Source: Choristocarpus tenellus KU-1152
Taxonomy: Eukaryota > Protista > Phaeophyceae
Direction: 5' to 3'
Assembly (NCBI GenBank): GCA_964200185.2
Contig: CAXNAD020000047.1
Span: 1-36,014, forward strand
DNA: 36,014 nt
In this document: piece by piece, positions 4,901-35,803 of the stretch
Numbering within the stretch: the stretch's first letter is position 1
Layout: each line of letters begins with the position of its first letter
Program-made: the position numbers and the translations under genes
Notes under the pieces: model-generated
The model's database searches: none
Told to the model about the DNA's origin: nothing
Seen by the model: the letters and a program-made list of their open reading frames with translations, nothing else

Positions 4901-7900
4901 GTAAGAGAAAACTTTGTTGTGAACATGACCAGACAAAAAGAAAAAAGTAACATGTAAAGTAACATGTCTAGCCAACGAAGTGGTGACAGTAGACCCAACA
5001 AATTAGTTACTGCTTGAGGAACTTAAAGGAAATGAGGTGCTACCGATGCATTAACAGGTACAATCTTTTGAATGACCCTTGCATAAGCTCTCATTTCTTA
5101 TTGGCAATGTCACATTTCAACTTGAAATTCATTAAAGCATCTGTTTTACAGGTCTTTTTTTATGATTGATTGTATGTAATGGATTTTGAATCGTGCTGAT
5201 TCACAGGTGATGAGGTGTGTGCAATGTCATGAGGAGAAACTGGAATACACCATAAGAAAAAACATGACTATAGTATATTCCAGGGGGAAAGATGTGTTCT
5301 TGAAGGCATCCACTAGGGTCTGTAATACAATCTGCTTTGTCTAGGTCAGTAGATACAACTCTTTGAATCTACAAAACAATGTATACTTGTATGTACATTA
5401 CATTCTCATCCAGAATGGTACTATCATCAGCAGTATGAAGTATCACAAGTAAGTTAATAATAAATTGAAAAAAACAATTTTGAGGCTACTCTAACACTAA
5501 GTACCAACCTGTCCCAAAAATTACATACTTAAATAGGTGAAGGATAAAAAGATGTAACAGATTCTTGGATTTCCTAGTTAAGCAGATCAGAACATTCTCT
5601 ATATAGTATGATGAGAATGCACTTTCAGCAGTAAGTTAATTATGTCCTGGAGTATACCAACCCTTGACATTCAGAATTAGATCACGTGCAAATCATTGCA
5701 TCAAAAGAAAGACAACTTTATCAAGGAACACTGCACATCCAACAATTACTTTTTTCTTACACACCAGCTTCAGTCTTGAACATGCTTTAAGTAAAATATT
5801 TGAAGGGTATACCCCTGGGGATTTCAGATATTTTCTGTTGCTAGACTAGTCCATCACATTTTTTAGTATGGAGGGCGAACATTGGTGGTGCTCACCTGCA
5901 AGCTGGGCTGCTCTATGGCGCCGATTCATGTTCTCTGTCAGGTCGTGTAAGTGTGCCTGCAGGAGTATATAATTGAGAAGACCGTTACATATGGAACTCA
6001 GTGACACCAGAAGCAACATCAAAAAGGCATGTATTATTGAGATAACTATATACCTTATCCATGAGGAAGGTTGGTAATGGTGCCACACCAATCGCAGCAC
6101 CAAGCAGGCGATGTACACAGATATCGGCATAGCGACGGATGGGACTTGTGAAATGTGTGTAGACAGGGGCAGCAAGACCATAGTGGTGCCACTCATCTTG
6201 TGACTTTTCTCCAGAGCAGAAGTATTGTGCAGGCATCATGCACCTGTGGTGGAGAAACAATCTCAAATGAGCCACATTGCAACCACATCTCGCATAAAAC
6301 TTATGTGGCCTGAAAATCAAATATGTGTAGAAGGTGGGAACAGAAGGCAAGAAGTGTGTACAAAAGACTTATCTGACTTGAGGAAGGCTTACATCTCCTC
6401 CTCATGGAAGGCTACTGAAAGACCTTCCCAACACAAAGTGTATTCAATAGGTACAGGTACAGAGCGATTTGAGTCTCACAGCAGGTCAGGAAATGTAGAA
6501 AAAATGTATTAATATTACAGTTGATTTGAAATGGTTGCAGGGCATCCCACATGACAAGGCAGAATATTTTGAGTCACCTTGTACTGAGAATGCGCAACAA
6601 CTTATTGAAGTAAGGGTCTTCATCCCTCACTGCCTCATCCAGTGAATCAGCTAGCTTCTTCGAGTCATCAACTTCAAGCTTAACCCCTACAGCCTCTGCA
6701 GTGGAGAGAAGTCCTTCGAACTGTTGCCTTGATGGAGCAGGGTGCCGCCGCAGAACTGACAAAGTAGGGAAGTGCCTGTGGTGAGAAAACGTGCAACAGG
6801 ACTTGAGTCCACACAACAGGACTCTCTCCAAGTGGGAAACACCATTTCTCATGTTTGAACTGTGTACTCCACAGTTAGAAGTGTGCAGTTATCTCCACTT
6901 TCAAGTGCAGATCTGAATTGAGGTCTTTAAATTCTGTCAGGTATTTTAGTGTACAGTGTGTCTTTCATATCGAGGTACAACTTATGGTAATTCAAATGAG
7001 TGTACATGTGGAAAAAACACCAGAATTCGTGAACACCATCTGAGAGTGTGAGGTGTCATGTGACAAATTGACAGGCCAAAATAAAATTGCAAGCAACTGT
7101 TGACCTTCCAGGCAATTAAAAGAGCAAATACAAGTAGCATCTTTGACATATTTTCTATACTTAGAACAGTAGGAACTAGTTGAAATACCAGATGAACCAT
7201 CTCTTTGTTTTCACAAGATGGTTGAGAAGTAACTACAGGGTCTTGAAAGTCATGAAGGATGCAATAGTGGGGCATCTATATCCAACAAAATACAATACCA
7301 GAAAAAATTCAAATGAAAGATAGGCCTAACAGAACATCTAACGAAGCACCAGTCCCACTCTTTTGAAGTGGTTCACAGTAAAATACCCACTCAGATATTG
7401 TCAACTAGGCCAAACATATGTAGGCAAATGAACCAATTCGCATGAAATCTCTATGGGAGGCATGGATTGTATCTCTTTCACATTCTTAAGTAAGATTAGA
7501 TCCAATCAAGGGTGACCCACAGTGCCCAACGTTTTCAGTTCACCTTAGTATTTTTTTTCCCACTGTAATGTTGGCCAGCAACATGAATTCCTCAACAAGC
7601 GCATTGGCCTCCTTCAAAGCATACATTTGCACATCAGTGGGGTTCTGACTTTCACTGTCCAGAACAAAACGAACCTGTCAAACAGGTCATCACAAGGTGG
7701 AGGAAGTAAACAAGGGCGAGGGTAAAAGCTCTCGGTACACTAAAAAGTCTAGGAAGGGGTGCCCTTTACCAAAATTAACAGTGTACAGAACAGGAATGAA
7801 TAAAGAACTTCCGCATCCCACAAAAAGCCCACCTCTGGGGAAGCCAGTGTTAGGGCTCCAGCATCAAGCCTTCGTTTCCGGAAAACCTTTGCCAGATCAT

Positions 7901-10900
7901 TGAGTCGTCTTACGCTCTGTGCCTTGATATCATTGGTGTTGGGATTATCAAGCATCAACTGTGCCTCGTTGTATGTTAGAGATGCCACGCTATGTATTAT
8001 CGACTTGCAGAAGTCAGCCTTGATTATCTCACCAGAACAGGTCATCTCCCAGATAACACTAAATGCAAACCTGTGGTGGAATGTTGTAAGTCAGCTTCAC
8101 ATACAACAGGTTGTTGTAATAATGCAAGATCAGACACATTTTGGGTAGAACACATTGAGCAGTCTACTATTTGCCCTGTGTGAGGTCAAAAGTTTTACTT
8201 CAAGGAGGTACAGGCATAAAAATATACCTATCAACATTTGCCCGAAGTGAGCACAGTGTTTCTGTGAGCAAGCCTGGCAACATATCCAGGCGTCGCTCAA
8301 CAAGGTATGTGGAGGTACTACGTAGAGCTGCTTCTTCATCCATAGCAGATCCCGCTTCCACAAAATAGGTCACATCGGCAATGTGCACTCCCACCTACTT
8401 CGGAAGTATAGAGATCATTGGGACAGTCTGGTCGATTGATGCAGCTTCAACAAAGTAAAGGGGAAACTGTAGGTTTATTTGGGCGGTGAGGTAAAGATAA
8501 AACCACTGTTCGAAGTGTACCATGACATAATAATTACCATACTTCAACAAATAGTTCAGAAAACAGTACACTTCATCTTGAAGACTGCAGATGGTGACTA
8601 ACCAGTGAGAAGCTTCCATAGATAAGAACTGTACACTGATGTGACATGTACAAGAGCCCTTTCCACAGTCCACAAGGCTTGACAGTGCAGTATGTTGAAG
8701 ACAAGTTGGACATTCCTTGAGACAGCATCATTGCCCAAACAAGTACAGGTAGAATCTACATACATTCACAATAGCTACATCCTAAGGTAATTCAATTCCT
8801 GGGGTTCCGATGGGGATTTTGATTTTGAAAGTATGGTGTGTGTGGCCTTTTCATTGGTAAGCAGAAGCGACCTATTCATCAATTCCCTGATTGGGTATTA
8901 CAGGATACTACAAGACACCTTTGCACATGATCTGGTATACCTCCATTTGATGAACACCTACACGTCAGTCACAGAATTCTTGCAAAATGTATGCACAAAT
9001 CATACCCATGATGCAGATGTTTCCATCTGCTCTTTGGTTCTCATTTGGAGGCTCCACAAAAAAAAATCATTCACCAGGTCAAACAGGAGCGTTCTTGACC
9101 AACATCCTTGGTAATGAACAATACCCTCCAAGAGTTGTCCCATCATTGCACAATTCTTGATGAAAGCAGAATGCTTGCCTACTTAAATAGGAAGAGACAA
9201 ACCACCTACATGCACACATCAACGCTCTGTACTGAGTACAGTGTTGGAGCAAATCATTTACTGTCCCTCTCTTATGTTTATCGGGAGCAATCAGAAGGAT
9301 ATGACATGTAACATGTGACATTAGACAAAAGTAGGACCATATTGAAGCACTGAAAGGTGTCTAAATCCCAAACATTTCAAGCCAAAAACAACAGTCAAAT
9401 TATGGAGGATTGGGACCCTCACCTGCTTTGTTATGGATATCATTTCTCTAGACGATCATGAAGGAGAAATTATTAATATACTCTGGAGTATAAAATAAGG
9501 TACTGTGCAAACATGCTCTCGTAAAATTGGAGAGTATGCGCCTACTTGAACCACAGTTCTAATCCATGTGGCATCAGTCTCAAAAAATTAGAAGAAATTG
9601 ATATGTTTCTTCACAGGTACCACAATGCATAAATCGTATCGAGCACAAATCACCACTGGAGTACACACCATCAGCCTACAACAAACTTGACTTACGCTAT
9701 GAGTAACACATAAACAGGCTGGCACATGATAACTGAAAATATCCTAAACTGAGTGAGACTATACGACTATAGAATATTGTATTGCAATGACCTTCACTAA
9801 CAATTAGAGTTCTTGATAGAAACATACTTTGAAGAACAAATAAATGTAGATGCTTAAAGGACATTACATTTTCTGACTTTTAGACATGGTCAAGAAAGTG
9901 GTATTCCAGTATGTAAACATCATCATTCACAAAATAATATAAATACATGGATTGTTTTGCTCTGGTACAACTGCAATCTATATAGCAGGGGAGAGAGTCC
10001 AAAGCATTAAGGATGCCACCAGCAGGAAGAGCATCACTGCATAAGGCATAAACTTCAAACATACATTGTGAAATATACAATACCAGTTTGGCATCCATGA
10101 CAAGGAACATACCAAAATCTGTGACCCTCTTGAGGAACATTTCAACGCACCTCAATATTACCATTTTCCAGTGTGCGAGCATGTAGGGCATCATCAATAT
10201 CCTTGCACCCTGGAGGGTCAATACTCAGCACTGGCAAATGCCGAAGGTCTTTCCTTCCCAGAGAATTAGCAGCAGTGATAGCCCAATCATTGGGCGGGAG
10301 ACAAGCTATCACCTTCCCAGAAAAACTCTCATGGGGTATATCATGCTCCATGAGAATCATCTGCAATAAGGGTAGACATACACAAAAGAGTTTCAAATGT
10401 GAGCAGTACATCAAGTAACTAGAATTTCACCCCATACCACAATATTTTAGCTACAGTAGATGACAAGCAATTCCATAGGTACAGCAAATGCTTAACAAGT
10501 ACACTATAGTCATTCTGAGCAGCCAAAACCTTGTGTGGAGTTGTCAATTGCATGTCTCATGGAGTCTAGATGCATTGAATAGTTACATGCTAGAGTGAAG
10601 TCCTAAAGTCAACTTGAAGACCAAGGAACACAGATTCAACTATCACATGCCCAATTTTTGTGCTGATGTAGAATACTTACTGATACTATAAACTGATTTC
10701 CTCAATCGCAGTAAATTTACTAAAACTCAAGTTTTCACAAGTATGAAATGCATTTACACTTGAAGTAGTGGCAGGAGTGCCTACCTCGGTCTCTGTTGCC
10801 TTTTCTCCCTTCTCTCCCACAGTCTTCACATAATGTCCAGTGGGATATCTGTTCTTGCACATGACAGGAAACGGTTTACTAGAGCTAAGGATGTCTGGGC

Positions 10901-13900
10901 ATGAACAATTATTTACAGTAATTGAACAAAATTAGAAAAATAAAAGACCTCCATGGTTATGGGTTGCATTCATTACACCACTTGTTACTTGTGTAAATCG
11001 AGTTCTTAGCAACAATTATTTCCAAATTGAAATCTTCTTACCTTGACCAAGCTGGCCAGGAGTCCATTGCCACAAGTATGCGTTTGTTCCTCAGAGCTGC
11101 CCGTTGACGGGTCTGAATTCGAACCCATGGGATCTGAAAAAAAATTAAATGTTGAGGTTGGTCTGTGCTATTTAACCCTCCCTCAACATCATCCAAATAT
11201 TTTGCGAGGCACATTACCACTCAGTTCCACGCCTTAGGTTAGCCTAACATGCTACAACATGGAACATTCTGACACCGTATCTAGAAAAAGAAGTATGTTG
11301 GGGACACCGCACAAGGGTCCTATTGCCTGATGTCATTATACTAACACTCTTATGCACTATTCAAATCGGTACACAATTTTGATCTTGTAGGAAGGTGGTT
11401 GATTCTCCATTTGACTGAAAGAGTCAGTCCACCACAACCACATACAGGTCCATTCTCATCACTCTCATCCAACCACTTTCACTTACTCCCACTTATCTAC
11501 CCACCTTTTTGTCTACCGGCACAAAGAGAGCACTTGTGCTTTGTCCATTGCCACTTGTCACCACCCTATCTCCCTCATCCTTCAGACTCCCACAATACTG
11601 TTTTTCCCGCCAATGTCTTCGGATAATACCCACCACCCTTCCACATGGTTGTTTAGCAGTTGTGCTCGAGAGGTTCTGGAGCTTCTCTGTATCCTCTATA
11701 GCTGGCTGTGCAGTGATATCAGGCACCAGTGTGTCACTGCTCTCTGCATTCTCAGTGTTGCTATCCTCAAGATTATCCTGTTACATAGCAGTAAAGATTA
11801 TCTCAGTTTTTGTATGAATCTATTGAGTATTGTTATTAATATCACTCAAGGGATATATGCATTGTTCACATATTGAATCAAACTTGGACAGAAGAACATC
11901 ATATGCCAGAACCCAAGGATGAACCCATGTACATCAATCAATTCCATACCTTCCTTGCGTGAGAGCACTATGTGGAGGTGCATTAGTAAATCATTGGCAT
12001 GTTTGCTACCCTTGATATTTTCTCAAGATGCTCTATAATCCTAACACACACTGAATACCCTCACCTTTAACTTGGTGTCAGTGTCACCGTCTCGAGAAAA
12101 CCACTGGGCCTCAGGGAGTAGCTCAAAAGCCACAATGTCACCATCGACACCCCTGTTGATACATTCTGCACCTCTGATGTAAACAGCAATGCGTTCATAT
12201 TCCTGGAAACCACAGAGAGAATATAGAAGGTAAAAATTATTCAGGAAACATGCACACCATGAAACTCTTTTGGCTACTCAGTCTTCTGGTTGAGATGTTG
12301 ATGTGTGTAGAATTTTGGTGTTATGATATGCAAACCTAGTCTAAGTCGCAAATCTTTGGTCTCAGCAGTGGGTCAGCAAAACGGAGGCAGTAGCCTCATG
12401 ATGCCACAAACTAAATGAGGGGATACAGAGATACAGAAAATAACACACCACTAAACAAGCCAATTTCATGGACTCATAACTCTGTAGTACGTACAAAAGA
12501 GATAGGCAGAAGGGGGACAGGAGGAATTTGCATCTCTACTTAATGAAGTTGCAAGCCCAAGTAAGAGGTAACATTGATAAGACCCTTACCAACAAACCAA
12601 ACAGAACACAGTGTGTGCTTTTCTCACTGTAATTTCTGAGAAACAAGTGTATTGAAGACAACTTTCACAAACCTGCATCCCTTGTGCAACAACGTAACAT
12701 TTGTTTGAGCTTCCACGTTCTGCCCGCAAAGTGCCTTGAAAGAACCTGACAGCACACAATAAATTAAATATTCCAGTATGAAGTGAAACCATTTAATGCA
12801 GGCATGTGTGGAAAAGTGTTAAGGTGTTAATCAAGCATGTCTTGATTCAATAACGAAAAGGCTCTGTATTACTATTAATAGTGATATGTGAGCTAAGGCG
12901 CATCCTACCTTAGACATAGGTGGTCTACTTTTACGACCTCTACACATACATGTAGATGTGTGCTGTGTTTTGGATCTCTAAACAGGGGGGCAGTCGGTAA
13001 TCTGCTCCTTCAAGCCCTCATTCCTATATTTTGACCCAGTAAAAAAATTACACTATTAAAACCCAGATCCTCATTGAAAATAACATTCTGGGTCATACCA
13101 GCTTTTAAGAAACATAAAATAGTCATAAATATGCTGTGTTGATGCTCTAGTGTCTTTGCAGACATGAAACTACACACCTTCCCTACCATCCCTTTGTGTA
13201 GAACAGATTTTTCAACTGGACCTGGCAACAAGGTTTTGTGCAGGCAACAGATGACTCTTTGCTTCGTTCTCTTCAACCTTCATGGCAATTTGTCAGGTAG
13301 AAACTCTTCCTGGTGATGTCTTTGCCTGATGTGATGTAGAGACACAAACCCTTCCCAAAAATAACTTGGTAAAATGCCAGTCCTTACAGTAAACAGCACC
13401 ATGCAAATCACATGCACCTGTACATTTACTGTCTTCAACTATAATTTTGAAACTGTTCTGTAGGTACTAATCCACTGATCAAAACAACCCATACAAACAA
13501 GTGTAGTTCCCAGCTCAATCCACAGGACAATACTGATTCTAAATGAGACTTTTCATCCCACACACACCAGGCACCTATATTGTTACACTTGGAATGGAGT
13601 GGTTTAGTGCTGAGGGCATCTATGCCTGCAATAGTCTAGCCTAACTAAACTGGGGTAGATTGGGTCTAGGTAAAGATGGATGTCTCCACATCCTCCCCCA
13701 CCATAAAATATTCAAGAACAAAAGTTTGATGAAGTCATGTAAAATCTTTTGGGCCACCACTGGCGCCACTGCACTATAGAGGCTCCTGCCATGATAGAAC
13801 AGCAAGGTCCCTCCACTTCCACATAAAATTCTAGATGCCTCAAACATCCCAAACCAATCTCATGGCTTGATCCATGCCCACTAACCAGAGGAATACAACT

Positions 13901-15645
13901 CTAACTTTTACTATACCAAATGGTGCTAAATCCATGGTAGAACAGTCAATGTCGAGGGTGACACCATCACAATACATAAGACTTAACCTACACCTCTTAT
14001 CCTGGCACAAAGCATACACCTTGACGCACTTGCACAAATACATAACCATGTGCCTGACCTACATTTCGAGTCCCATCTCACAACATACGCACATGGTAAG
14101 AGGTGTGAACAATTTGGACAAGGTGCTCCAAAGCCTCAACCCCATGGAATTTTTTCGTTCTCACAAACATTGCAAAGCGTACCAATCACAGCTTGCATCG
14201 AGATTAATACAGAATGGACACCAAAATGTCCATCTGCCATCCAAGCTACACCTTGCCCCATCTTGGGCCCCACAGGTCAAGCAATGTGCCAAACAAATTT
14301 TGAAAGAATATGACACACAAACGATTTGATATAAATCGCCCCTGAACAGCTTTTGCTCATGAGACCATGTGCTCACTGCTACACTATTTGCACAATTTCG
14401 GCACCAATGGAAGAGCATGCTTTATGCAGCACAAGCTGTGAGTTCAAGAGAACTCACCTGCCTTGTCGGATTCCAGCTGTCAGCTCAGACATGGGTCTAT
14501 GCTCTGGGAAAAGTAAAGTTCTTTGCCCGGGAACCCTTGCACCCTCGCTGGTGCCATTGGCAACACTAGCGTCTGTAGCAGTTGCTTCTTCTGGAACAAG
14601 GAGCTCTGGAAGGTCTGGGTAAAGTCCTTGAAGTGACGCTACGTAGGAGTGGATTGTCATAACAGACATATTAGCTTCCCTCGCCAAACCAAGGTTGGCC
14701 CGATCATTGGTCAAAAGTAGCACATCAACTTCATTACCAAGCTGTTTTCCAAACCTGCAAAGGCAGCACAGGCAGCACATTGTAGACAAGTAGGAAACTT
14801 CACTAGGTCTTCCGCGATCCTGAAACCATAAACCTCTTCTATCCGTGGTTGAGGGAAAACTGATCGAGTTGAAAATGCCGCCACTCACCAAGCCGTTGAC
14901 TGACGAATGGCCCTATCATTGCGGTCATTTGGTGACTCGCCGGGCAACTCAGCGGGGTAGGTTTCGCAATGATGCTCGTTAGCAAAGAAGACAAACACCC
15001 GAGAGTCGTCTTTGATGAGCTGCTTCAGGCGACGGTATAAGCTAAGGTTGTTGTGGCGTGTTTCCTGTACAAGAGATAGGGCAACAGGGCACCACATCTA
15101 AGATAGATTACACAGAGAGCTTTTCAAAAAAAAGACCGAGAGTTCGAAGTCCTCGAATCACGAGACACCAACCCAGTATAGACAAATCACTCGCCTCCAT
15201 CACAGTCTGAAGTACTATCACGCAAGAAAGTGCTGGGCTGGGGAACTCCAGCAAATCCATTTGGTTCAAAACCACGTTCGTGTCCAAGACCTGAGGACGG
15301 AAGCAAGGTGGTAAGACAAAGGCGAATTTCAAGTTCCTCTTGTCCTGCATCACCTTGAGCTGCCCTTACCAAGAATCGCTTCATGACAGCATCGCCACCC
15401 AGCTGTACAAGGTCAACCTGGGGTGGAGAGAAGTGTTCTGGTCATTTCAGTAAACTGCTTCCTTGGCATCGAGCATGTAGTCTAGTTGCACATCATCTGT
15501 TGGGTTAAAAGGTGCCACTCACCCTAGACAAGGCGTTGCCAGCGAGCGACCCACAACCAATGTCATCCCTCAGGAAGTGATCAGCTACAATGCGGAGGAT
15601 TTTCCCTCTACGGGTTTTCTTGAAAAAAGATCTGCTCTTATGCAT
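1988..15645 (-). CDS. DIS3: Exosome complex endo/exoribonuclease DIS3/RRP44 (PIN, cold-shock, RNB and S1 domains), 20 exons, 1008 aa
   Basis: Hand-spliced exons (minus): 15645-15523, 15417-15370, 15290-15195, 15064-14889, 14754-14458, 12745-12673, 12202-12065, 11777-11505, 11133-11042, 10848-10785, 10360-10151, 8394-8228, 8070-7833, 7674-7544, 6775-6578, 6243-6054, 5956-5896, 4891-4761, 4031-3911, 2187-1988. Total 3027 nt with all phases compatible. Motifs: N-terminal [23 protein letters not shown]; PIN VLDTN / QTVMEE / NDRNDRAIR / LLTND; RNB catalytic [54 protein letters not shown]; S1 [10 protein letters not shown]...VLDKVRVHV; basic C-terminal tail HKRR. Confidence 0.96.
15065..15194 (-). 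other. GC-AG intron (DIS3 intron 3)
   Basis: The donor GAG|GCGAGT is the only nearby donor that gives in-frame QTVME|ETRHN, preserving the conserved PIN EE. The GT 4 nt downstream is out of phase. Confidence 0.85.
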
Positions 15646-15848
15646 GTCCCTTCCTCGACCACCAAGTCCCCACACACACAACACTCTCAACCGTGAGTTC
15701 AAAAAGGGTTTACATTGGTATCATCAAGAAAGCAGAAGGCCTTCATACAGCATAAAAAACTTATAATATTGAACATGAACCTTACACTAAAATAACTGTT
15801 TGTCACCTTCACACAATAGTTTTGGGGTGTGACGTTCCCTCCTCTACG
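15646..15848. promoter_or_regulatory. Bidirectional promoter and 5' UTRs shared by DIS3 and the Tim17/22/23-family gene
   Basis: Only 203 nt separate the two divergent ATGs (15645 and 15849). There is an AT-rich core (TTATAATATT, 15761-15770) and a TGACGT motif at 15830-15835. The region lies within the CpG-retaining segment. Confidence 0.7.
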
Positions 15849-17880
15849 ATGTGGCATCACGTGAAAATCACCCTTCTGTTATGCTTAGCAATGCTGATTA
15901 ATGTGAATTCGCTGACGTGCTCTTCGAGCTTTGCTCTGACCTCCCCACGCCGTTCAAACTACAGTTCAGGTAGAAGGTGAGAGAGTTTTGAGTCTTCTGT
16001 CCACTTCAAGTGAGGTGTTAGCATGGGAATTTGATCTTCTCTAATGGTATGCAATCTATCGCCGAAATCTCTTGACCCCCAATTCGTCACTTCAGGGGAA
16101 CTATTACTTTGGCATCTTCTGCCTCACATCTGGAAACAGGGAGATCAAGTAGGGGGGTGTTGGAGAACTGTTTCGAGGCTACCGTGGGTACCATCAATGC
16201 CTACATTAGTGGATATATCACTGGGTAAGTGACTGCATGGAAAAAGTATTGTGATAAAACAGAGGACAAGGTGCAGCTGACTTCCTTCGCTTTACTGACT
16301 CGTCGACATCCCTGTCCCAAGGTTCCCCTTAAGGATTTAGTTGCAATAGTTTTGTCATTAACTCGTTTGTAGAGTGTACACATTTGTTGGCATATACACC
16401 AGGCCAAGCGCCTCCCCAGCGGTAAACTACTGTCTTGTTGGAGATAATAGTCGGGGACATAATGAGATGTGGCATGTATCTTTGACCATAAAAGTGAAGA
16501 AGATTCCAATGTTCTGAAGTGAAAGTCGAAGCTCGACTGTACAAACAACTGCATCTTCTATGAGTAGTAGATGCAGCTAGTTCCTGTTTGTGTGCATTTT
16601 CATTTGCAAATATGCTCATCTCCCTAAACGTATTCCCTTCCCTTGCACTAGAGACTCTTGTAGCTATCACATTATTGTGAACTAAATTGTAGTGATTTGA
16701 ACTCCACTTGCCAATAAAAAACAACGAGTCTAGCAGTATGGCCAACTCACCATTTGTGATCGTTTGGAATTGACACTCATCCCATCACCCTTGTTGTAGA
16801 GGGAATCGCGGAGGAGAGGCTAAATATTTCATCCCTTCATTATTATGTCATTGTTGTGTACAAGTACTGCATGGAATGGTAGGCTGTTTTTTGAAGCTGC
16901 AAGTCCCAAACATCTGCAGAAAGAGGTCAGAGAGAAAGCTTGCCGATGGTGGTATTTGTGAAAAACTATTGACTGAAATCTGCACATAGTGCACCAATGC
17001 CTCATGTTTTGTGTCTAAATAAATAGGGTGAGAAGACCCCAAGGGATATTTCTTAACTGATGGTCAATTGCAGGTATAGGCTGAATTCTTGATGAGCACT
17101 AGAGTTGAGCAACAGATAGTTAATGATAGGATCTTTGTGGTTTGTGTCAATGGTACTGCTGGGGCTGTTTTCATAAGCCACGACTCCAAGATTTAAATTT
17201 CTCTCACCCATTTTCTTTGTCCCAGCCTTGTATGGGGAGCGATCATGGGCAGTACATGGGCAAGGGTACCTGATGTTGGGTTCTTCAGCAGCGTTCGGAC
17301 CAAGTCAGTTCAAATGGGTGGAACCTGGGGAATGCTGACTGCTTCGTTTCAAGGTTTCACAGCAATATCACGGGTGTTGAGGGGGAGGTGGGTGAACATT
17401 GTCCTCATATTGGAAAAGCAACTGGGATGGAAGGGGGTCGCTTTATGTGGATTTTTTGTAGACAACAGGTTGAAGGTGTTGTCCATTGTTGTGCGAGTTG
17501 CAACAAAAGAGACATGCCATGGAAAAATATTTGTAGAGGTTACATGACTGAATATAGTTGATCCTTCAATTTTTCCTTTTAACAGTGCCGCTTGATAAAA
17601 CAAATCAATCATATTCTTACACATCATTTGCCTTGAAGCAGGATTTTTGACCTTCCTCTTTGAACTAACTTCCTTCTTTTTCTCATGCAGGGACGATGAA
17701 TGGGATCAAATTTTTGGAGCTTGCGGAGCTGGGGCATTTTTATGCAAGGATAAGGGACCACAAGCAATGGCACAGGGGTGCTTATCGTATGGACTCCTAT
17801 CGTATCTTTTTGCATCTATGGGAAAGAAGGATGAACTTGATGTTGTTGACATCCCTGTGAATACTTTTAAAGAGCTGTAG
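15849..17880 (+). CDS. Tim17/Tim22/Tim23 (PRAT) family membrane protein with an N-terminal signal peptide and transit-peptide-like extension, 4 exons, 202 aa
   Basis: Exons 15849-15976, 16096-16224, 17226-17387, 17691-17880 (609 nt; three phase-2 GT-AG introns; CTAAC branch point near 17665). Translation: MWHHVKITLLLCLAMLINVNSLTCSSSFALTSPRRSNYSSGRRGTITLASSASHLETGRSSRGVLENCFEATVGTINAYISGYITGLVWGAIMGSTWARVPDVGFFSSVRTKSVQMGGTWGMLTASFQGFTAISRVLRGRDDEWDQIFGACGAGAFLCKDKGPQAMAQGCLSYGLLSYLFASMGKKDELDVVDIPVNTFKEL. The glycine-zipper TM1, the RGxDDxW..GxxxAG motif and GPQAMAQGC match the Tim17/22/23 family. Confidence 0.88.
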
Positions 17881-18803
17881 GACTAGCATCTATGTCACCA
17901 TGCAGTACTTCTGGTCATTCCCACACTGGGTGATCCCTAAAGGGGCAACAGAATTTATTTTTTACAAGGGATGTATGACAGCAAGATAACTTTCTTGTCC
18001 TTTGGAATGATCATTTATAGGTCATGAACTGTTGAGTTTTGAAATTGTAGAGCAAAGAGTATTATGGGTTGCATTGTAAATTTATTCCAGTCTTTTGAGC
18101 ACAAGCAGGTGACACAATAAAGAGCCAACTCAGCAACAGCCTGCCAGTTTTGTCATGATGTGATTGACTGCTTGTTGACCAGTGGTTTTGCAGCCTCACA
18201 ATGTTACAGATTCTATGTAGGAAAAGACCACATTCATTTGTCTTTTATACTGATACAGTTTTGTCCATGAAATATGTTTGATTGTAGATGGCTTCGTGAG
18301 TAAGAGGGTCTATCTATTGCACAATCAAATTGTGAATATGGTCACATTGGTTGTGTCCCAATTCTATCGTCAAAATTTTCATAGAAAGCACACATCCACC
18401 AATATATGGAAAAGTTACAATGGTTTCTTGATTTTCACATTGGTTTGAATTATATTGTGGTGATGCTTGAAAGAGAAAAATAATTGACAGATTTTGTTAA
18501 GGAGAAGGAAGCAACATACACCATATGCTCGAACCTGTGGTCAGAAATGCAAGGCAAAAATATGTCTAAAGAGGTTGGACCTGTGTGCCAAAAAAAGGCA
18601 GAACCATCAGTGAAGTCCACAAGAGATAAGAAATAACAAGAAAAAGCATAATTTAAGGATCAGGTCGAGCATGAAGGACCATGATTGGTTCAACAAGGAG
18701 CACACATCCATAAGCACTTCAGAGAATCTAAGTTAAGTCCTTGCATCCACTACAATGCTGGCAGTCGCCATCTAGGATGGGACCAGTCTTGATTTTTTTT
18801 TAA

Positions 18804-27000: not shown

Positions 27001-30000
27001 AAAGGATCTGTTTCAAGAGTACTGTGTGTCACTGTCAAGTTTTCTTTCCTAGTAAAGGGTGCCTCTTCTATGATGATAGATTGGAAATGATGGCATCCAC
27101 ACCTTCCACACAATCCAGAAAATCAATACAGAGTTCAAACACACTACCTCTTGTTGTTCTTGCTCCAAGGAAATAAATTCCTGAACTCGTTCTACAGAGT
27201 TGAAGTGGTTCTCCATTGCTGTTGAAGAGCGAACACCAAAGCTCAGTGTGCGTGTTATTGTTAGGGCATATGAAAGCCCAAGTCCAACCTGCATAATAGA
27301 CATGATCAATGGCACGGTACCAAACTTAATTGCTTGCTAAATCAACATTGCTACTACAAATGCGCATTGTGGTCCGGCTTGTTTTTCTGCTATGTCAATA
27401 TGCAAGCCAGTTGTGTATTACAGATCCCCTGTAATCAATCAAGGTCATACAATATATACCCAAACAATATCCTACGAAGTACTAACATTGAGTGGTCTCC
27501 ACTGCATACAGACGTCCAAGCATAAAAACACTTCCCCTCACTACGAGATCAAATAATGTGAGAACCTACATCTAGTCCCCCTGACTCCCTGGTTAACTGA
27601 ATCCCCTGGCCAACATTCTACTGGAGAGTACCATTATTAGTATATAAATATATTAGTATATAAATATATTTCATAATACTAGTACAATATCATGAGCACT
27701 TTTATTTTTATACCAAGAAATCATACTTCCAAGTACAAAGTCTCCAAGTACCCCACAGAAATTACTACTAGTAGTACAATACACACCCCCTGTGAAAACA
27801 ATGTCACTTTGTAACTGGAATCTTACAAGTACATCAAGTACAATAGGTTCAACCTGCTTGTCTGAAATTGTGGTAGCCACAAAGATGAGGGAAGGGAGAA
27901 GCAACACATTACATCATATATACCAGAACATACAATGCCTGGAGATGCGTTCCCCACAAGGATTGCCAGAAGAGCTGCAAGAAATACCGTCAACGCCCCA
28001 AGTAAGTCCAGCCGAATGCCAAGCCACCTGATTGAAGGTTGGGGGGGAAATTTACGAGATAAGAGAGGTGCAAGACATCCCTGTTGGACACCATCAATGA
28101 ATCAATGCAACTAATAGTTTAATACTCAAGAACGATAAGGATTCAATTCACATATTTTCTTATGAACTAGACTCCTTGACGCACCATTAAACAGTAATAT
28201 AAAAGTAGTTATATGTGCCTGTCGCACCTGTTGGTGGCATCCCAGCAGAGGCGGGCGCGCATGTTAGCGTCTACCAGGGAAAAGTTTTTCTGTGTCATCT
28301 TTTCTGTAGTTCTGTATGCCTGCACACTCGATAATCCGTCCAGTGTCTCCTCTAAGTGTGAATATATGGGTGACTTGGTGGCACTGTCAAGTCGCTTGAG
28401 CTGTGAAAGTAGGAAACAATTCCAACAGATTGCGGTTATGTGTGACATTTTAAAAAAAAATTAGAGTAAGGCAACCTCTCATAAAACTAAAAATGTGATG
28501 AACCTACCCATTTTCATTACCAAATTTGGCCAGTCAATTTCCTTCCAGTAAACTAAGTAACTGAGAATTCAACAATTCAGCCAGATTTGCTATGATGAAT
28601 GTCCCATAATTCTAAGGACTGCCAAGGAATGAAAACAATGGCAAGGACTGTTCTACTGTATACTCAAGAGGCAAATTTCCAATCTCGAAAAACTTTCAGC
28701 ATTAAATGCATCAACTCTAGGAAGCCAATACTACCATATCACACTATAATATTAATAATAATACAGAATAGCATCTGTAATGGGAGATTTCCTATTTTAC
28801 TTATTCTGTTTGAAGACCAAAAGACAGCAGTTGTATGATAATCACCCCCATACTAGGCATACCTCAACACAATTGAGCACTTCACCTCCTTTGCCGTTAT
28901 GCGGTATCGCAGCTGTACCCTGTAGTAACTTAGAGCAATGGGTCCAATGAAAATCAGAAATGCAGGTGTAGTACCAACCAAAACACCTACAGCAGTGAGC
29001 ATTGTCAGCAGAGCGTCTGCAAAGGAGGCCACAGTGGTGGGGATGACCATGTCGATGGTATCAAAGTCAGACGCAAACCTCGATGTGATGCGTCCACTTT
29101 CTGTCACTTGGAAGAATCTAAGTGGAGCACCAAGAACCTGTATGAGGAACACCAAGAAATGCACATTCAAAATACGGTATACAAGGGAATTACACACTTC
29201 ACAAGTTGGTCAAATAAGGCACACATTATGATATGAGGCACACATTATGGTGTATAGACCACTCCTAAGCTTCCATAAACACTCTAATATAGGTGCATCT
29301 CTGCATGAGGTTAGCAAATGTCCTATCAATAGCAATTGATTCTCTCGTTGCTGAATAGGAGATTTGCCCAAACCTGCAACAGTAGAGACTGATGAAGGGT
29401 AGTACTTGCTCGCAGACCAAACCAGCACATGACAAAGAACCGTATGCAGTTGATCATTACCACCACAAGGCACACTGTAGAATACCTGTGGATGAGAGAG
29501 GGTAGTCACCAAGTCAAACAGAGTCACCTTAGGTAGTCTATCTGCATGTCTAACTAGTACAGGCATTGGAGTCACCTACCATTTCCTCCAGTGAGGTGGA
29601 TGAGACTTGTGTAATGCACTAGCATGTTGAATTGGTGCAAGGCAGTAAACAGAAGCACCATATCATATATATATGTGGGCTGAATGCTATTACAAATAAT
29701 AATATCAATGAAATGATATTCAAATATGAGCAGGAGTGCAGTTAGGTTTACACTAGGTTGTACTTTCAGTAGAGAGGTTTAGCATTCTGTTTCACCAGCC
29801 GCCCACTTAGACAGTCATCAAGACAGTTGTATGTATGTGGTTGACTCAAGTAGTGTGTGCAAGACAGGAGGTACAGTATAATATTTGAGTGGTCCAGTAA
29901 TGTATACAGAGAAGGTGCTCCATCCCCCACAGAAAATCAATGCTCACACAGTCCTCTGGGCTATGAGTAACCACACCAGTAAAATTTAAAAGACAGGCAA

Positions 30001-33000
30001 TAACATATCTAGTAAACAATCTGTGCTGAGCTGTTGACTGAAAATGATTGACAAGTTAGTCCTAATTTTAGGAATAGTTTAGGAGAGAGCAGTTTAATAT
30101 CCAGGTGTAGTTGTAAGAGAGGACGGCACACTGAGTGGTGTATTGAATCAAGGCACACTTGCCATTTCAACCATCTGTGCACGTGTGGGGGGTTGAGCAA
30201 ATATTACAAGTGTTTTCAAGCTTCAAGCATTACAAGGATTCTAAAACTAAAGTGATAACCTGCCAGAACAGAGATATGACAATGTGGTTGAGCATAATCT
30301 GACCTTCAGCTCAATTTCAGCACTACAAAAGGGAGGAGGCAATTCCATCCTTGGACTTTGAAGTATTTAAAAGGGTGCATGCAATGCCTACTATTCAATC
30401 TGTTCACCCACACAGTCTAGGGGTCTCCCCAGTCCACCCCTAACTACAGAAGGCAAACAAAAAGCAGATATTGGGTGGAAAAGGAAGAATCTCATCTAAA
30501 TTCCTTGCTATCATTATGGTAATCATATTAAAAGGCTAGGTACTATAATATTACATGCAAGAGAATTGAGGAAGACTCTAAAAAATGACCACAAGTAGCA
30601 ATAGTGCAGCATAAACTAGTGTGGACTCACGCTGATAGATATGTCATCACTGGTGCTGAGGAAGGCCCATCAGATGTGTCAGACCACAGAGCCAGCACAT
30701 ACTCCTTGGACACACTGACAATCTACAAAAGTTGCACACCCACAGGCATCCAAGAGGACAGCCATTGAGTCATATTCAGTCCAATAGTGAGAAATGAAGT
30801 AGCACTTACCACCCCACCTCATATCAGGCTTAACCTTCCATGGAATAAGTCCAAGTTAGCCCGTATTAATTTCATGTTAACAAATACTGAGTCCAACTTC
30901 CAATACCTGGGCCAGAAGTGAGACAATAATTGTGACCACCACTGCTTGTGCTCCACATGCTCGCATGTAGGCAGTATACACAGACAAGGAGACCCCGCCT
31001 TTGATCCTGTCTGCATTAACCTGGTCCATAAATTCCTTTGATAACTTGTGTTGAACCTGGTGAAGGCATGAATAGCAATTTTCTCTCATTGTATTAGATA
31101 CTTGCCAATGATAGCATAACAAGACATGTGAAGGACTATTGAATCAGTAATAGCCTAGATCAGAAGTTGAACATTCTAGGAAAATTCAATTGCTGCATAT
31201 CAAAAAGTTAAAGAGGCAACAGTGCATTCCAGGGTGGCAATCACAGACTGCAACTACAACTGACCTCCTTGGAATTGTTTTGAGGTGGTGCAGCTGTTCC
31301 ACTAAACAGAGGCTTCCTTTTGCTATCTCTCCCACCATCCTCAGAGGCATCAGTTGCCTAACACATGGGTTTGCAATTTGTTGTTAATTGCGTCTATTCA
31401 TTTGTGAGATGCAATGAACAATTTCCATATTTTGTGGTGCCAAAAACAACCTTGCTCTGGACAGTGCAAAACTGCCAACTCTGTCATTCTATGTCATTCT
31501 GAAGAGCTGTTCTGCTGTTTACCTTGAACACTGTCAACCCTTTCCCAACATCCGGCAGCAAGTGAAGGTCTTCACCCATCTTCACACTCCCATCCTTGAT
31601 CAAAATTATATTGTCCGCATCCTCAAGATACTGTAATAATGGGGACAGAAAGGCATCAGATATGATGTCATATGACAACCCCAACCAGTACACATGCTAC
31701 CATTGATAGTATTGGGATATCCCCTGTCATCACTCCATGAAGCAGACAACAGTACACAATCTGTTGAACAGGAAAGACTTGCTAGGGTATGTTGGGGAGA
31801 AGAGTTTCCTGCTCTGGAATCTTTCACACCTCCATGCAAATTATAGACTCTCCAACACAGGCATCAATGTCAAGAGTGCAATTTAATCAGCTCAATCCTT
31901 GTGTGTATGATGTCCAAGGGATTGATTTGCAGCCCTCCTCAGATAGTTTACTTGGGTGTACAACATTTAATGGGGCAGGACCCTCAACATGGAAAATCTC
32001 TTAAATGGCATTAACAGAAACCTCATAATGGAGAATAATAGGGTTGGAGATATTACTACCTGCTCCTGATGGGTAGACATGATTACCACCCCTTTGCTTG
32101 CCATCTCACACACAGCATGGTCAAACACCCATCGCCCTACGATGGTATCCAAAGCTGAGAGGGGGTCATCCAGCAAGGCCACCTGACATCCAGAGTAGAG
32201 GGCCCGAGCCAGTGCAATTCGTGCCTTTTGCCCCCCACTTATGGTTATACCTGATATCACAAAGTAATGCATCTTCTCAGTCATGATTTTCAAAAGAAAA
32301 AACAAATGGGCTTTGACTGGGGGTTGGAAAATTAGAACAGAAACACAGCACAAAGTAACAACAGCTCACAGAGCCGAGAGTCTGCATCACAAAGACTAAC
32401 CTTTGGCCCCAATGATTGCCTCATCTCCACCAGGCCATTCAGCAAAGTCTAGTTCCAGGGCACAGGCGTGTATGCAGTGCTCATACAGCTCTAGATCAAA
32501 AGTTGTGCGGGTGGACCTAACGATGGGCACAGTACAGCAAAACCAGAAAAAAATTGACCAGTTGCATATTCTTTCACAGAAACCAAATCATACCAAAGAT
32601 TCCTAAATTAAACATTTTGAAAAACAGTTATGAAGTCTGTTCACAACGTAGGTAGAATAGTACTCTGGAATGTACGAGAGTTTGATCTTCATTATCAATA
32701 TTCTTGTGGTAGGAGATAATATTAAAATATAAATTACGACAGGAAGAGGCAGTTCAGTTGGAAGGCACACACCCTAAGCATATGTTCTCCCTTGCAGTGG
32801 CGTTCACTATCCATGGTGTGTCTGGGCATAATGCAACACTATCATTCAGAGTCTGGATTATAACCTCCCCTCTGTCAGCTATTTGGTGCTCAATGATACC
32901 CCGCAGGAAAGTACTCTTGCCCGAGCCAACAGGTCCCACAATTATTGAGAGGCCAGTGCTGATTTCTGCTGAGACATTGCCCAAGCATACCTTGCCTAGT

Positions 33001-35803
33001 AAGGGGACAGAAAAAAAGTCAATAAAGTGTTACAAGATGGACAACCAAACAAACGTAGCAAATTCAAGGTAGGATGCAGGTTGACTGCAAGTCTGGGGAG
33101 TAATGGATTACTTATTGTTCTTCAGAAATGTGCGATGTCATGATATCCTGAGAGGCCTATGAACATATTGTAGTCTATCTCGCGTATGGTCAACAAACCC
33201 TCTGAAAACATGGTCATCAAATGTAATTGCTCATGGTATTGGTGATTTTGTCTATTGGAAATACAGGTTTCACATCTCCAAGACTCAGCACTCTCACCTG
33301 GGGCAAGTGCAAAATCGACATTCTCCACCTTGACTAGTGGTCTTAAGAGGGTGCAATCTGGTGTGCATGTATTTCCTCGAGTAGTCTCTTTCTCTAGTAG
33401 GAAATTCTCAAGCCTCTTAATAGCCACCTTTGTTTTGCACAATTTTGGGGAAACATTCACAATTTGTGATGAGGGTAATTTTGGTATACTGTTCCATTTA
33501 TCTTTCTATATACTTTAAAGTAGAATCCAATGGCTTTCACAACCTTCACAGAATGTTTTATGCATGCACAGCGAGACTTGCGGTTATGATCGGTTGTGGT
33601 ACAACTCTTGAAATTAAAGAGTAGCCTTGTTGTTTCATGCACCACTGGATGTGATATACTTTGCAATAACATACAGAGTTCTTGAAAATATGGAGCTCAT
33701 GACAGCTCCAAAAAAATAGGACATACACAATCAAGACATCATAGCACATACCTTACAGGGTATGAACCTTCCGTGACTTCAGGACAGATATGAAAATGCA
33801 TCCTGAACTTATCTCTATGCAAATGTCAAAAAGATGTCATATGTTTACGCTGCTGTAGGGTGATACCACCCATCCCATGACAAGCACTGAACACTTGACA
33901 CTACCTTCAATATACCATAAAGCACCTCAACAACCTCTCAGTTGTTCTTGGGAGATCCCCACCAATAGGTAATACAATGAAATAATCCCTCCACTTCCTG
34001 TCAGTAATTAGGCAGATCCCTCTCATAGCTTGCCTTGGCCTAAAAATTCTCACTAATTTGGCTGGTTCTAGTATCAGGTAAGCATTCCCTACATGTGCAA
34101 TATACTATAAAACCATAACTTCATCAAAAGCAATGCACAACTTTCATCACATGTAAAATATGCCTAAAGTTTCTGGAGTTTATTTTGATGTAACAAAGAC
34201 AAGTGCTGTTCACTACTGTGTGCGGAACCTTTGAGTATAAACACATGTACATGCATGGAGAGTCGTATGAACCCAAAATAACTTGGTGCTGGGTGGCTAA
34301 CTGGTGTCACATTCTGGGCCCATGTGGATACGCACTATTATTATTAATAAAACATGTACCAAAAAGAAAAATGTTCTGGGCAGACCATTCTGGTGCATTC
34401 TTGCATTACAGATGGGGAGCGGGGTTTGATGAAGGTGACAACTACCCACACAGCTTTGTTTCTAGCAACAGTTACAACTATCTCACAAAAATAGGTAGCC
34501 CTTACACTTACAGTATACTCACTCCTCCTCTTCAATTTATATTATCTATCAGGAGCCTCAGTCAAGCCTTTACTCTGGATTATTGTTGACTACTGAGATT
34601 TCTTGCATTTCTAACCTTTGTGTTCATAACAACCTTAACATGAAAGGACTATGTCACCAAAAAATTGATGCCAACCTCTGCATTTCAAAGAACACCACAA
34701 CTCAACGATATTGTTAGCCTGGGATATGTCAAAACCTCCAAAACGAAACACATACTCCTTGCATAGAGATCGATTCATGATAAGACTTGGGGAGGAAGAA
34801 CCAAACCTTTGAATCAGCTAGGAGCTGAATTGCTTTGGGCATGACGTGAAAGGGATGAGACACGGTGTTGAACAGAGCAAGTGCCGTAAACGCAGTCTCT
34901 GCATTAAGCTCATTCCCAGTGAGCACATACGCACTGAAGGTGGCAAGGGCAACCAAGATTGGACTGGAGCGCATAACAGCCTAAGGGAGTCAGGGAAAAA
35001 ATTGGAGAAGGGTCATCATCATGGTGAGGAAGGGCTGTGAATCTAAAGGATGTGTTCTGAACTTGACAAGGATGGCATGCTGGTGCACTCACAAATTAAT
35101 CAATCGATCAACATAGACTATTGTGGAACACAACAGACCTACCATACTCCATGTGCAGTCAACAATTTTCATGGGGTCCACACATGCACACTATCCATAG
35201 CAAACAAGGATATCATCGAGGTTCCTATGGTTTCATTGCACATGCCACCTGCCTGATTGCACGCATTCAGATTCAATGCCTTTCGAATACTCCCAAGCTC
35301 CTTTGACCTCAACCTCTCCACGTGGGATTGGAACATATCCCCGAGAGAGTTTAGCTTAATTGTCTTAATACCGTCAATAACCTCAGTGATGAGATTGATT
35401 CGAGAGTCTGACACCTTAAGGACACTCTTGCGATAAGCTTGTGATCTTAAGAGAAAAGTCAAAAAGAAGAAAAAAATGACATGTCACAGAGAGGGGACAG
35501 AAAGTTGAAGGATTGGTCAATGGTAAACACATAGGCATCATTGCACAGCCTCTGGAGAGACTTTGTGACAAATTTAAATAAGAGCAACAACAAGAGTCCA
35601 TGACCTGTGTCCAAAATAAATCCTCACCTCCGTGCAACCCAGGTCTCCAGAGGTATGAGGATGGGTATTGTGCACACACCAACCAATGCAGAGGGACCAA
35701 GCACATAAATCAGCAGAAACGTACAGCCCACAGCTGTTAGAGGAGCAGCCCACAGATTGTGAAAAAATACCACCATTTCCCGAAGCGTGGAGGCATCCTT
35801 GGC
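24050..35803 (-). CDS. ABC transporter subfamily C (MRP-like), 5'-partial: end of TMD1, NBD1, TMD2, NBD2
   Basis: 20 frame-consistent exons (minus): 35803-35628, 35445-35253, 34980-34807, 33427-33298, 32995-32773, 32516-32401, 32250-32060, 31630-31523, 31357-31265, 31056-30907, 30722-30631, 29485-29374, 29137-28886, 28400-28228, 28027-27934, 27288-27148, 26653-26529, 26343-26118, 25225-25026, 24299-24050. NBD1: [39 protein letters not shown]2: APLRFF...[43 protein letters not shown]2: [32 protein letters not shown]. The gene continues beyond 36014. Confidence 0.95.
27635..27670. repeat. Tandem duplication of 16-bp TATTAGTATATAAATA (2.25 copies), intronic
   Basis: Exact copies at 27635-27650 and 27651-27666, followed by TATT. 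Confidence 0.85.
34981..35252 (-). other. GC-AG intron (ABCC gene)
   Basis: The donor CAG|GCAGGT joins ...LNACNQ|[10 protein letters not shown] in phase 0. The adjacent GT (G|GTGGCA) is phase 1 and would frameshift. Confidence 0.75.

Follow-up and report, generated by a model that had tools for sequence, protein, structure and literature searches.

Could a relative of the mitochondrial protein Tim22 have a place in the envelope of a plastid that is bounded by four membranes? The question arises from a locus of the brown alga Choristocarpus tenellus KU-1152 on contig CAXNAD020000047.1 of assembly GCA_964200185.2, of which we analysed positions 1 to 36,014 of the forward strand (36,014 nucleotides, hereafter the window, to which all coordinates refer). 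A gene of four exons at 15849-17880 on the plus strand encodes a product of 202 amino acids, as read from the frames with exon borders taken from spliced transcript contigs. The initial annotation, drawn from the letters alone, had seen in it a Tim17/22/23-family channel with a presequence made up of a signal and a transit peptide, and had proposed that it serves the complex plastid. The reading that we favour, to which we give roughly even chances, is that of a Tim22-type PRAT protein with a bipartite-looking leader, and thus a candidate insertase or channel of the four-membrane plastid envelope. The core of the earlier idea stands on a conserved leader, on named homologues that come only from red-plastid lineages, and on red-algal orthologues that carry an N-terminal extension and no signal peptide.

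A Tim22-type member of the Tim17/22/23 family

The proposed membership in the Tim17/22/23 family is borne out by profile searches, orthologues and a modelled fold. Searched exon by exon, the Pfam Tim17 profile (PF02466) matches exon 3 (E 0.025, 15.3 bits) and exon 4 (E 1.5e-4, 22.5 bits) collinearly. Each of these exons alone scores below the gathering score of 32.7 bits, and ten full-length homologues, including the Hapterophycus protein P0005, score 33.3-59.4 bits, above that cut-off. Exons 2-4 align to orthologues of 200-236 amino acids at 44-58% identity. With exon 4 as query, phmmer was run exhaustively over 1.84 billion representatives (E <= 1e-3) and returned 35 matches in all, the best being a Discosporangium fragment (P0001, 74% identity) and the best full-length one P0005 (63%). 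By sequence similarity, the closest match of the gene is in early-branching brown algae. One further match of this search, the bacterial repeat protein P0014, is confined to the C-terminal tail and was rejected as spurious.

When single exons were compared with PDB sequences, exons 2 and 3 had no match, and an SH3 structure matched by exon 4 was set aside as a chance match. A profile of 19 family members was more informative. Compared with PDB sequences, it scored best with yeast Tim22 (6.4e-15) and human Tim22 (1.2e-12), followed by Tim17 (5.5e-7), OEP16-3/B14.7 (2e-5) and Tim23 (1.8e-3), with NDUFA11 above 0.1. The fold was tested on the orthologue P0005, for which an AlphaFold2 model was built from a 38-sequence alignment. 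The model has an N-terminal helix (residues 2-22), a disordered stretch (22-70, pLDDT < 50) and four domain helices (74-107, 116-151, 156-170 and 176-194), with pLDDT of 83-97 over the domain. Its top Foldseek matches in the PDB were Tim17 (8e1m_A, 4e-4), Tim22 (7cgp_A and 6lo8_A, 3e-3), B14.7/NDUFA11 and Tim23. Searches of the ESM Atlas gave family-level leads, the nearest shapes being streptophyte Tim17-family and HP30-2 clusters (TM ~0.5). On account of the profile scores and the Foldseek matches of the P0005 model, the predicted product is assigned to the Tim22-type, four-helix members of the family.

The protein ends 18 residues after its fourth transmembrane segment (TM4), and no SAM domain was detected in the ten homologues scanned. 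An acidic C-terminal motif, DELD(V/F)VD(I/V)PV (about 17824-17877; DELDVVDIPV here), is kept from brown algae to Tribonema, is weaker in diatoms (SELMYTDVPV), and is absent from the red-algal orthologues aligned; beside the window protein, it was noted in P0005, P0011, P0012 and P0044-P0046. This motif could be a sorting signal or a partner-binding tail.

A separate canonical Tim22

Two further Tim17-family loci, with exons on contigs C10438 and C1201, emerged when all six frames of the 164-Mb genome were searched with Pfam. The C10438 exon matches yeast Tim22 at 2.1e-14 over 59 residues and is far more Tim22-like than the exons of the window gene, of which exons 2-4 alone gave no useful match to a solved structure. 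The C1201 exon is weakly Tim23-like (E 0.12). The initial annotation had recognised that its idea would suffer if this were the only Tim22 of the genome; by these similarities the window gene is an extra paralogue beside a separate canonical Tim22 on C10438. The window gene itself is single-copy, in that P0005 matches exons 4, 3 and 2 collinearly in the genome and no other locus. A weak exon-4 match on C4923 (L005) was dismissed as a chance match in a PHD-finger-like frame.

The cysteines of the protein had been read as half of the Tim22 disulfide, with a Tim22-type N-terminal cysteine in the motif ENC and no partner in the second transmembrane segment (TM2). The absence of the partner holds, since the TM2 cysteine of yeast Tim22 (C141, in GVECVIE) aligns with a non-cysteine column of the family, which is Ala in the window protein. 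The other half of the claim is not supported: the ENC cysteine sits just before TM1, and the cysteines of human and yeast Tim22 are aligned 4 and 7 residues further on in the profile alignments. It is also conserved only in brown algae and in one Tribonema paralogue. Judged from these alignments, the Tim22 disulfide pair is not kept in the Tim22-like family.

A conserved, bipartite-looking leader

Signal peptides were assessed with a home-made combination of Kyte-Doolittle hydrophobicity and the (-3,-1) rule. By this measure, exon 1 encodes an 11-residue hydrophobic core from residue 7, with a mean of 3.05, in agreement with the signal-like stretch first described there, and a comparable core is present in 25 homologues from the signal-bearing groups, whose N-terminal hydrophobic maxima range from 1.7 to 3.5. 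Several sites compatible with the (-3,-1) rule follow the core, including VNS|L and SSS|F. The stretch described earlier as rich in Ser, Thr and Arg and free of acidic residues was found as such, with 34 residues after VNS that include no Asp or Glu. Over the whole pre-domain region of 65 residues, there are 1 acidic residue, 7 Lys/Arg and 19 Ser/Thr.

All full-length homologues that were examined from brown algae, Chrysoparadoxa, Tribonema, Parmales and the diatom-type clusters, including Corethron, begin with the signal-like helix, and both Tribonema paralogues have a signal-peptide-like N-terminus. The Skeletonema model starts just after this helix, which is present in longer members of the same cluster. 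Acid-poor pre-domain regions recur in brown algae, with 0-1 acidic residues in 63-82 residues for five of the six orthologues and 3 in 98 in the long Pylaiella model. Outside brown algae these regions are less clean (1-12 acidic residues), and the acid-poor profile is limited to the window protein and brown algae. Near the end of the hydrophobic segment, Cys24 (codon 15918-15920) is invariant among the aligned N-termini of the window protein, Tribonema, Chrysoparadoxa and brown algae, which is unusual for a region that is supposedly cleaved.

Red-algal orthologues have no hydrophobic N-terminus, with hydrophobic maxima of at most 1.6 ahead of TM1. They begin instead with extensions of 45-65 residues in which Ala, Pro, Arg and Ser abound and a Phe or Trp often occurs early (LAF in three, for example). 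Judged from general knowledge of red-algal transit peptides, this composition fits plastid targeting.

Distribution and phylogeny

All named homologues come from plastid-bearing algae of the red lineage. They comprise brown algae (Hapterophycus, Scytosiphon, two Ectocarpus, Pylaiella, Undaria, Sphacelaria and Discosporangium), other ochrophytes (Chrysoparadoxa, Tribonema with two paralogues, Parmales, and the diatoms Corethron and Skeletonema), and the red algae Porphyridium purpureum, in which the protein is annotated as 'TIM22-3', and Eucheuma denticulatum. Oomycetes and other stramenopiles without plastids, animals, fungi and land plants gave no named match in the exon-4 search, which used a short query; given that query, this is modest evidence of absence and no proof. 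Word-based searches with the family profiles reached no plant PRAT and no canonical Tim22, and the red-algal profile found only close red-type proteins. The initial annotation had put forward for checking a restriction of orthologues with bipartite leaders to plastid-bearing ochrophytes: no named oomycete match was found, and the orthologues of red algae lack the signal helix.

Many of the public brown-algal models are fragments in which one exon is fused to residues read from an intron (P0002, P0003, P0004, P0006, P0007, P0013, P0015, P0042 and P0043). Because of this, the family is under-represented in proteome-based surveys.

A maximum-likelihood tree was inferred under LG+C20 from 41 rows, with the 59-residue Tim22 exon of the same genome as outgroup. 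The ochrophyte sequences fall into a single clade (96/97), which branches internally in line with the relationships of the organisms and is divided into diatoms with Parmales on one side and Chrysoparadoxa, Tribonema and brown algae on the other (95/88). A red-algal clade that includes Eucheuma (96/96) stands apart from the ochrophytes, and Porphyridium is unresolved on the backbone. The tree also contains a second signal-bearing clade (95/85), consisting of P0047-P0057, P0069, P0029 and P0035. Its members have motifs of their own (ARSVDQV and QKDPFEQYV), and one of them is in assembly GCA_041443065.1. No copy of this type was found in the C. tenellus genome.

Gene structure and expression

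Three public runs of one study were aligned to 13300-18800 of the window. Runs X1 and X3 look like genomic assemblies, and X2 contains spliced contigs. The X2 joints are 15976|16096, 16224|17226 and 17387|17691, all with GT..AG introns on the plus strand and at depths of 315-900, and the codons at the junctions are AGG, GGC and AGG in order. The exon borders of the 202-residue model that had been drawn from the letters are identical to these joints. The gene is spliced and expressed, and exon 1, whose place in the mRNA had been left for RNA to confirm, is certainly spliced to exon 2.

Exon 1 (15849-15976; joint depth 315) holds 42 codons from the ATG at 15849, which is the first in-frame ATG after a stop, and ends with two bases of the AGG codon. 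It encodes the signal-peptide-like helix (about 15849-15911) and the start of the transit-peptide-like stretch. Beyond intron 1 (15977-16095, 119 nucleotides, GT..AG), exon 2 (16096-16224) completes the acid-poor leader rich in Ser, Thr and Arg (to about 16162) and also encodes the ENC motif and TM1. It aligns with brown-algal orthologues across SSHLTTGRT..ENC, and is matched by residues 62-102 of P0005. Intron 2 (16225-17225, 1001 nucleotides, GT..AG) separates it from exon 3 (17226-17387; Pfam Tim17 profile positions 40-75), which encodes the loop between TM1 and TM2 and TM2 itself, and is 54% identical to residues 100-153 of P0005. After intron 3 (17388-17690, 303 nucleotides, GT..AG), exon 4 (17691-17880; Pfam Tim17 profile positions 77-111) encodes the R-x3-D core, TM3, TM4 and the acidic C-terminal tail, and includes the stop codon. 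The 3′ untranslated region (17881-18662) measures at least about 780 nucleotides, as read from a 974-nucleotide X2 contig at 17689-18662 with a depth of 199.

Run X2 also has an unspliced contig across intron 2 (16195-17254), with a depth of 18 compared with 315-900 for the spliced contigs, which could be pre-mRNA, intron retention or DNA carry-over. At position 15872, X2 has G where the window has C. This synonymous change (ACC to ACG, both Thr, at codon 8 of exon 1) probably reflects a different allele or strain.

Targeting, origin and alternative explanations

Plastid localisation, signal-peptide cleavage, target membrane and function are all matters that we infer. Under the favoured reading of a plastid Tim22-type PRAT, the predicted signal peptide would bring the precursor into the lumen of the endoplasmic reticulum (ER) that belongs to the outermost plastid membrane. 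The periplastid and envelope translocons would then be crossed by means of the transit-peptide-like part, some 40 disordered and acid-poor residues, and the mature protein would come to reside in the plastid envelope. By analogy with Tim22 and with plant HP20 and HP30, it may serve there to insert or translocate envelope proteins that are polytopic or have no transit sequence, as an insertase or channel, or else to conduct amino acids or metabolites. Plastid delivery is favoured because of the acid-poor stretch, the restriction to red-plastid lineages, and the extended red-algal orthologues without a signal peptide. As these orthologues have a simple N-terminal extension only, the innermost envelope membrane would be the most economical location, and it appears the most likely one.

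The initial annotation had supposed that a mitochondrial paralogue was retargeted to the secondary plastid. That view is not upheld, as red-algal orthologues exist with a non-hydrophobic extension and the ochrophytes form one clade apart from them. The red-algal extension suggests an origin with the red plastid rather than a fresh retargeting of a host Tim22. The simpler reading is that a plastid PRAT was already present in the red-algal endosymbiont, and would have gained its signal peptide after the gene had moved to the host nucleus; retargeting of a host Tim22 paralogue after secondary endosymbiosis is the less simple one. A more specific version can be advanced only tentatively. In it, the protein would be a conserved and hitherto unrecognised component of plastid biogenesis throughout the red lineage (red algae and ochrophytes), an innermost-envelope, Tim22-like insertase for polytopic transporters, inherited from the endosymbiont and fitted later with a signal peptide. 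We are just as hesitant to see in such an insertase the plastid counterpart of the mitochondrial carrier translocase, which would then probably be present in other algae with red complex plastids as well.

Several observations count against a plastid Tim22-type PRAT with a bipartite leader. The canonical PRAT motif, [GA]x2[FY]x10Rx3Dx6[GAS]Gx3G, matches 0 of 38 family members, although the relaxed core R-x3-D-x6-[GAS][GA]-x3-G matches 27 of the 38. The root of the tree is placed by a single exon of 59 residues, which gives weak direction, and the red-algal extensions could be mitochondrial presequences rather than transit peptides. At the start of the gene, a second in-frame Met at codon 15 would, if used, give a product without the hydrophobic core. 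The exon-1 contig of X2 is continuous over 15521-15974 and extends leftward into the minus-strand DIS3 gene described below; because it merges into that gene and the contigs are strandless, the 5′ end of the plus-strand transcript relative to 15849 is not fixed. From the conservation of the N-terminus in orthologues, the mRNA would begin upstream of 15849. Lastly, the +1 residue is not consistently F, W, Y or L across orthologues. In diatoms, one of these four residues at +1 separates stromal and inner-membrane cargo from periplastid cargo, and the Leu or Phe offered by VNS|L and SSS|F had been read accordingly in the initial annotation. Both sites are compatible with cleavage in the window protein, yet the rule is not conserved among orthologues and the argument is weak.

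Because the +1 residue varies, membranes that face the periplastid compartment also stay under consideration. It is unlikely, though worth serious attention, that the protein stops in one of them (the periplastid membrane or the third membrane, which corresponds to the outer envelope) as an OEP16- or HP20-like solute or preprotein channel. Diatom leaders without an aromatic residue or Leu at +1 retain their cargo in the periplastid compartment, and at this position the most likely residue of diatoms and Parmales is R, G or K, that of Tribonema V or S, that of Chrysoparadoxa M, and that of brown algae L or M (M in Undaria and Pylaiella). In the window it is L, S or F depending on the site, the one homologous to that of Tribonema giving S. 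Plant HP20 is, in addition, described as an outer-envelope protein (PMC5072337). On the other hand, an aromatic residue lies at most four positions from the candidate site in most homologues, alternative sites give F at +1 in the window and in Corethron, and the similarity of the family to Tim22 far exceeds that to OEP16-3. An N-terminal extension is lacking in most outer-envelope proteins of primary plastids, whereas the red-algal orthologues have 45-65 residues of it. These last orthologues, which carry an extension and no signal peptide, also make it quite improbable that we are dealing with a Tim17-family protein of the ER or endomembranes that has a signal peptide only (PMP24/TMEM135-like, for example) and no plastid role. 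A signal peptide alone does direct a protein only to the ER, and plastid entry is argued from composition and an imperfect +1 rule. The named homologues are nevertheless confined to red-plastid lineages, the post-signal region of the window protein and of five of the six brown-algal orthologues is nearly acid-free, and the profile is closest to Tim22.

That closeness to Tim22 can also be turned towards mitochondria, since the best solved relatives are mitochondrial Tim22 and public annotations name relatives 'TIM22'. The gene could then be a second mitochondrial or dual-targeted Tim22 paralogue whose N-terminus is not an ER signal, or whose translation starts at the Met of codon 15, and the unmapped 5′ end of the mRNA and the chance that red-algal extensions are matrix presequences would both be in its favour. 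We regard this as very improbable. A canonical Tim22 is present elsewhere in the genome, the Tim22 disulfide pair is not kept, and a hydrophobic N-terminus occurs in every full-length homologue examined from the signal-bearing groups. Mitochondrial Tim17/22/23 proteins have internal signals and not N-terminal hydrophobic leaders; the conserved signal peptide therefore argues against a normal mitochondrial inner-membrane protein.

Neighbouring genes

A minus-strand exon at 15508-15645 matches the N-terminus of human RRP44 (1.6e-8) and belongs to a DIS3/RRP44 exosome nuclease gene that spans 5000-15645 on that strand. The exons of this gene include 15521-15645, 14456-14752 and 5988-6350, the last with the RNB domain. 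The introns of this gene appear in X2 as CT..AC joints, four of which are joined to the exon-1 contig of the Tim22-like gene. The two genes lie head-to-head, and their RNA contigs merge. An intergenic spacer of 203 bp (15646-15848) separates the divergent start codons of DIS3/RRP44 (minus) and the Tim22-like gene (plus), and is presumed to be a bidirectional promoter that contains both 5′ untranslated regions. Further along, at 28856-33460 on the minus strand, there are exons of an ABC transporter, with ABC_membrane at 28856-29197 and ABC_tran at 31970-32353. Judged by eye, this gene is probably of the ABCC type.

Significance and comparison with known systems

It is poorly understood by what route polytopic membrane proteins enter the inner membranes of four-membrane plastids. 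To our knowledge, the parts list of the red complex plastid (SELMA, Omp85 and Tic20/22/110) lacks an insertase devoted to this task. The Tim22-type family, which has a conserved leader of plastid style, ranges from red algae to diatoms and kelps and was not found in any named plastid-free organism by our searches, would be a concrete candidate for one. Since diatoms have orthologues, it can be approached in Phaeodactylum or Thalassiosira. The family is relevant, too, to the question of whether plastid PRATs, such as HP20 and HP30 of plants, date to the common ancestor of Archaeplastida.

Two genes of the Tim17/22/23 family in Ectocarpus, Esi0019_0065 and Esi0046_0104, were reported to fit no subfamily, with the comment that what they do was still to be clarified (Delage et al., 2011; PMC3097184). 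The Ectocarpus orthologues P0037 and P0038 are probably one of these unassigned genes. Unlike in the present analysis, no signal peptide was noted for them and no plastid role was proposed. Our searches of the literature outside subscription journals turned up no report of a Tim22-like PRAT assigned to a complex or red-algal plastid.

Plants offer the closest parallel in function. HP20/HP22 (PRAT1) and HP30/HP30-2 (PRAT2) are Tim22-like proteins of plastid envelopes, and HP20 and HP30 have been implicated in the import of transit-sequence-less inner-envelope proteins or in amino-acid transport (PMC5072337, PMC5948301). Zarsky and Dolezal (2016; PMC5072337) grouped the plant plastid proteins HP20 and HP30 with Tim22, and Marchand et al. 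(2018; PMC5948301) mentioned algal PRAT homologues in three green algae only. The window protein shares with HP20 and HP30 its character as a Tim22-like PRAT, but is predicted to carry a signal peptide suited to a four-membrane plastid. HP30 has a C-terminal SAM domain after its Tim17 domain, whereas none was detected in this family, and neither the search of 1.84 billion representatives with exon 4 nor the word-based searches with profiles yielded a significant plant protein. OEP16, B14.7 of complex I (8bef_Y) and NDUFA11 belong to the same Pfam family and have the same fold, although their similarity is weaker (2e-5 and above 0.1, against 6e-15 for Tim22).

Mitochondrial Tim22 (6lo8_A and 7cgp_A) is the best-scoring solved relative, and has in common with the window protein the four-helix fold, the R-x3-D core and a Gly-rich TM3. 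It differs in having neither a signal-like helix nor an acid-poor leader, in place of which the window protein has a leader of 60-65 residues. The window protein, in turn, lacks the TM2 disulfide cysteine and ends in an acidic motif (DELDVVDIPV) that is specific to the ochrophyte clade. Tim22-like PRATs of plant plastids are already known; what appears to be new here is a Tim22-like PRAT that combines a bipartite-type leader with a lineage-specific acidic C-terminal motif.

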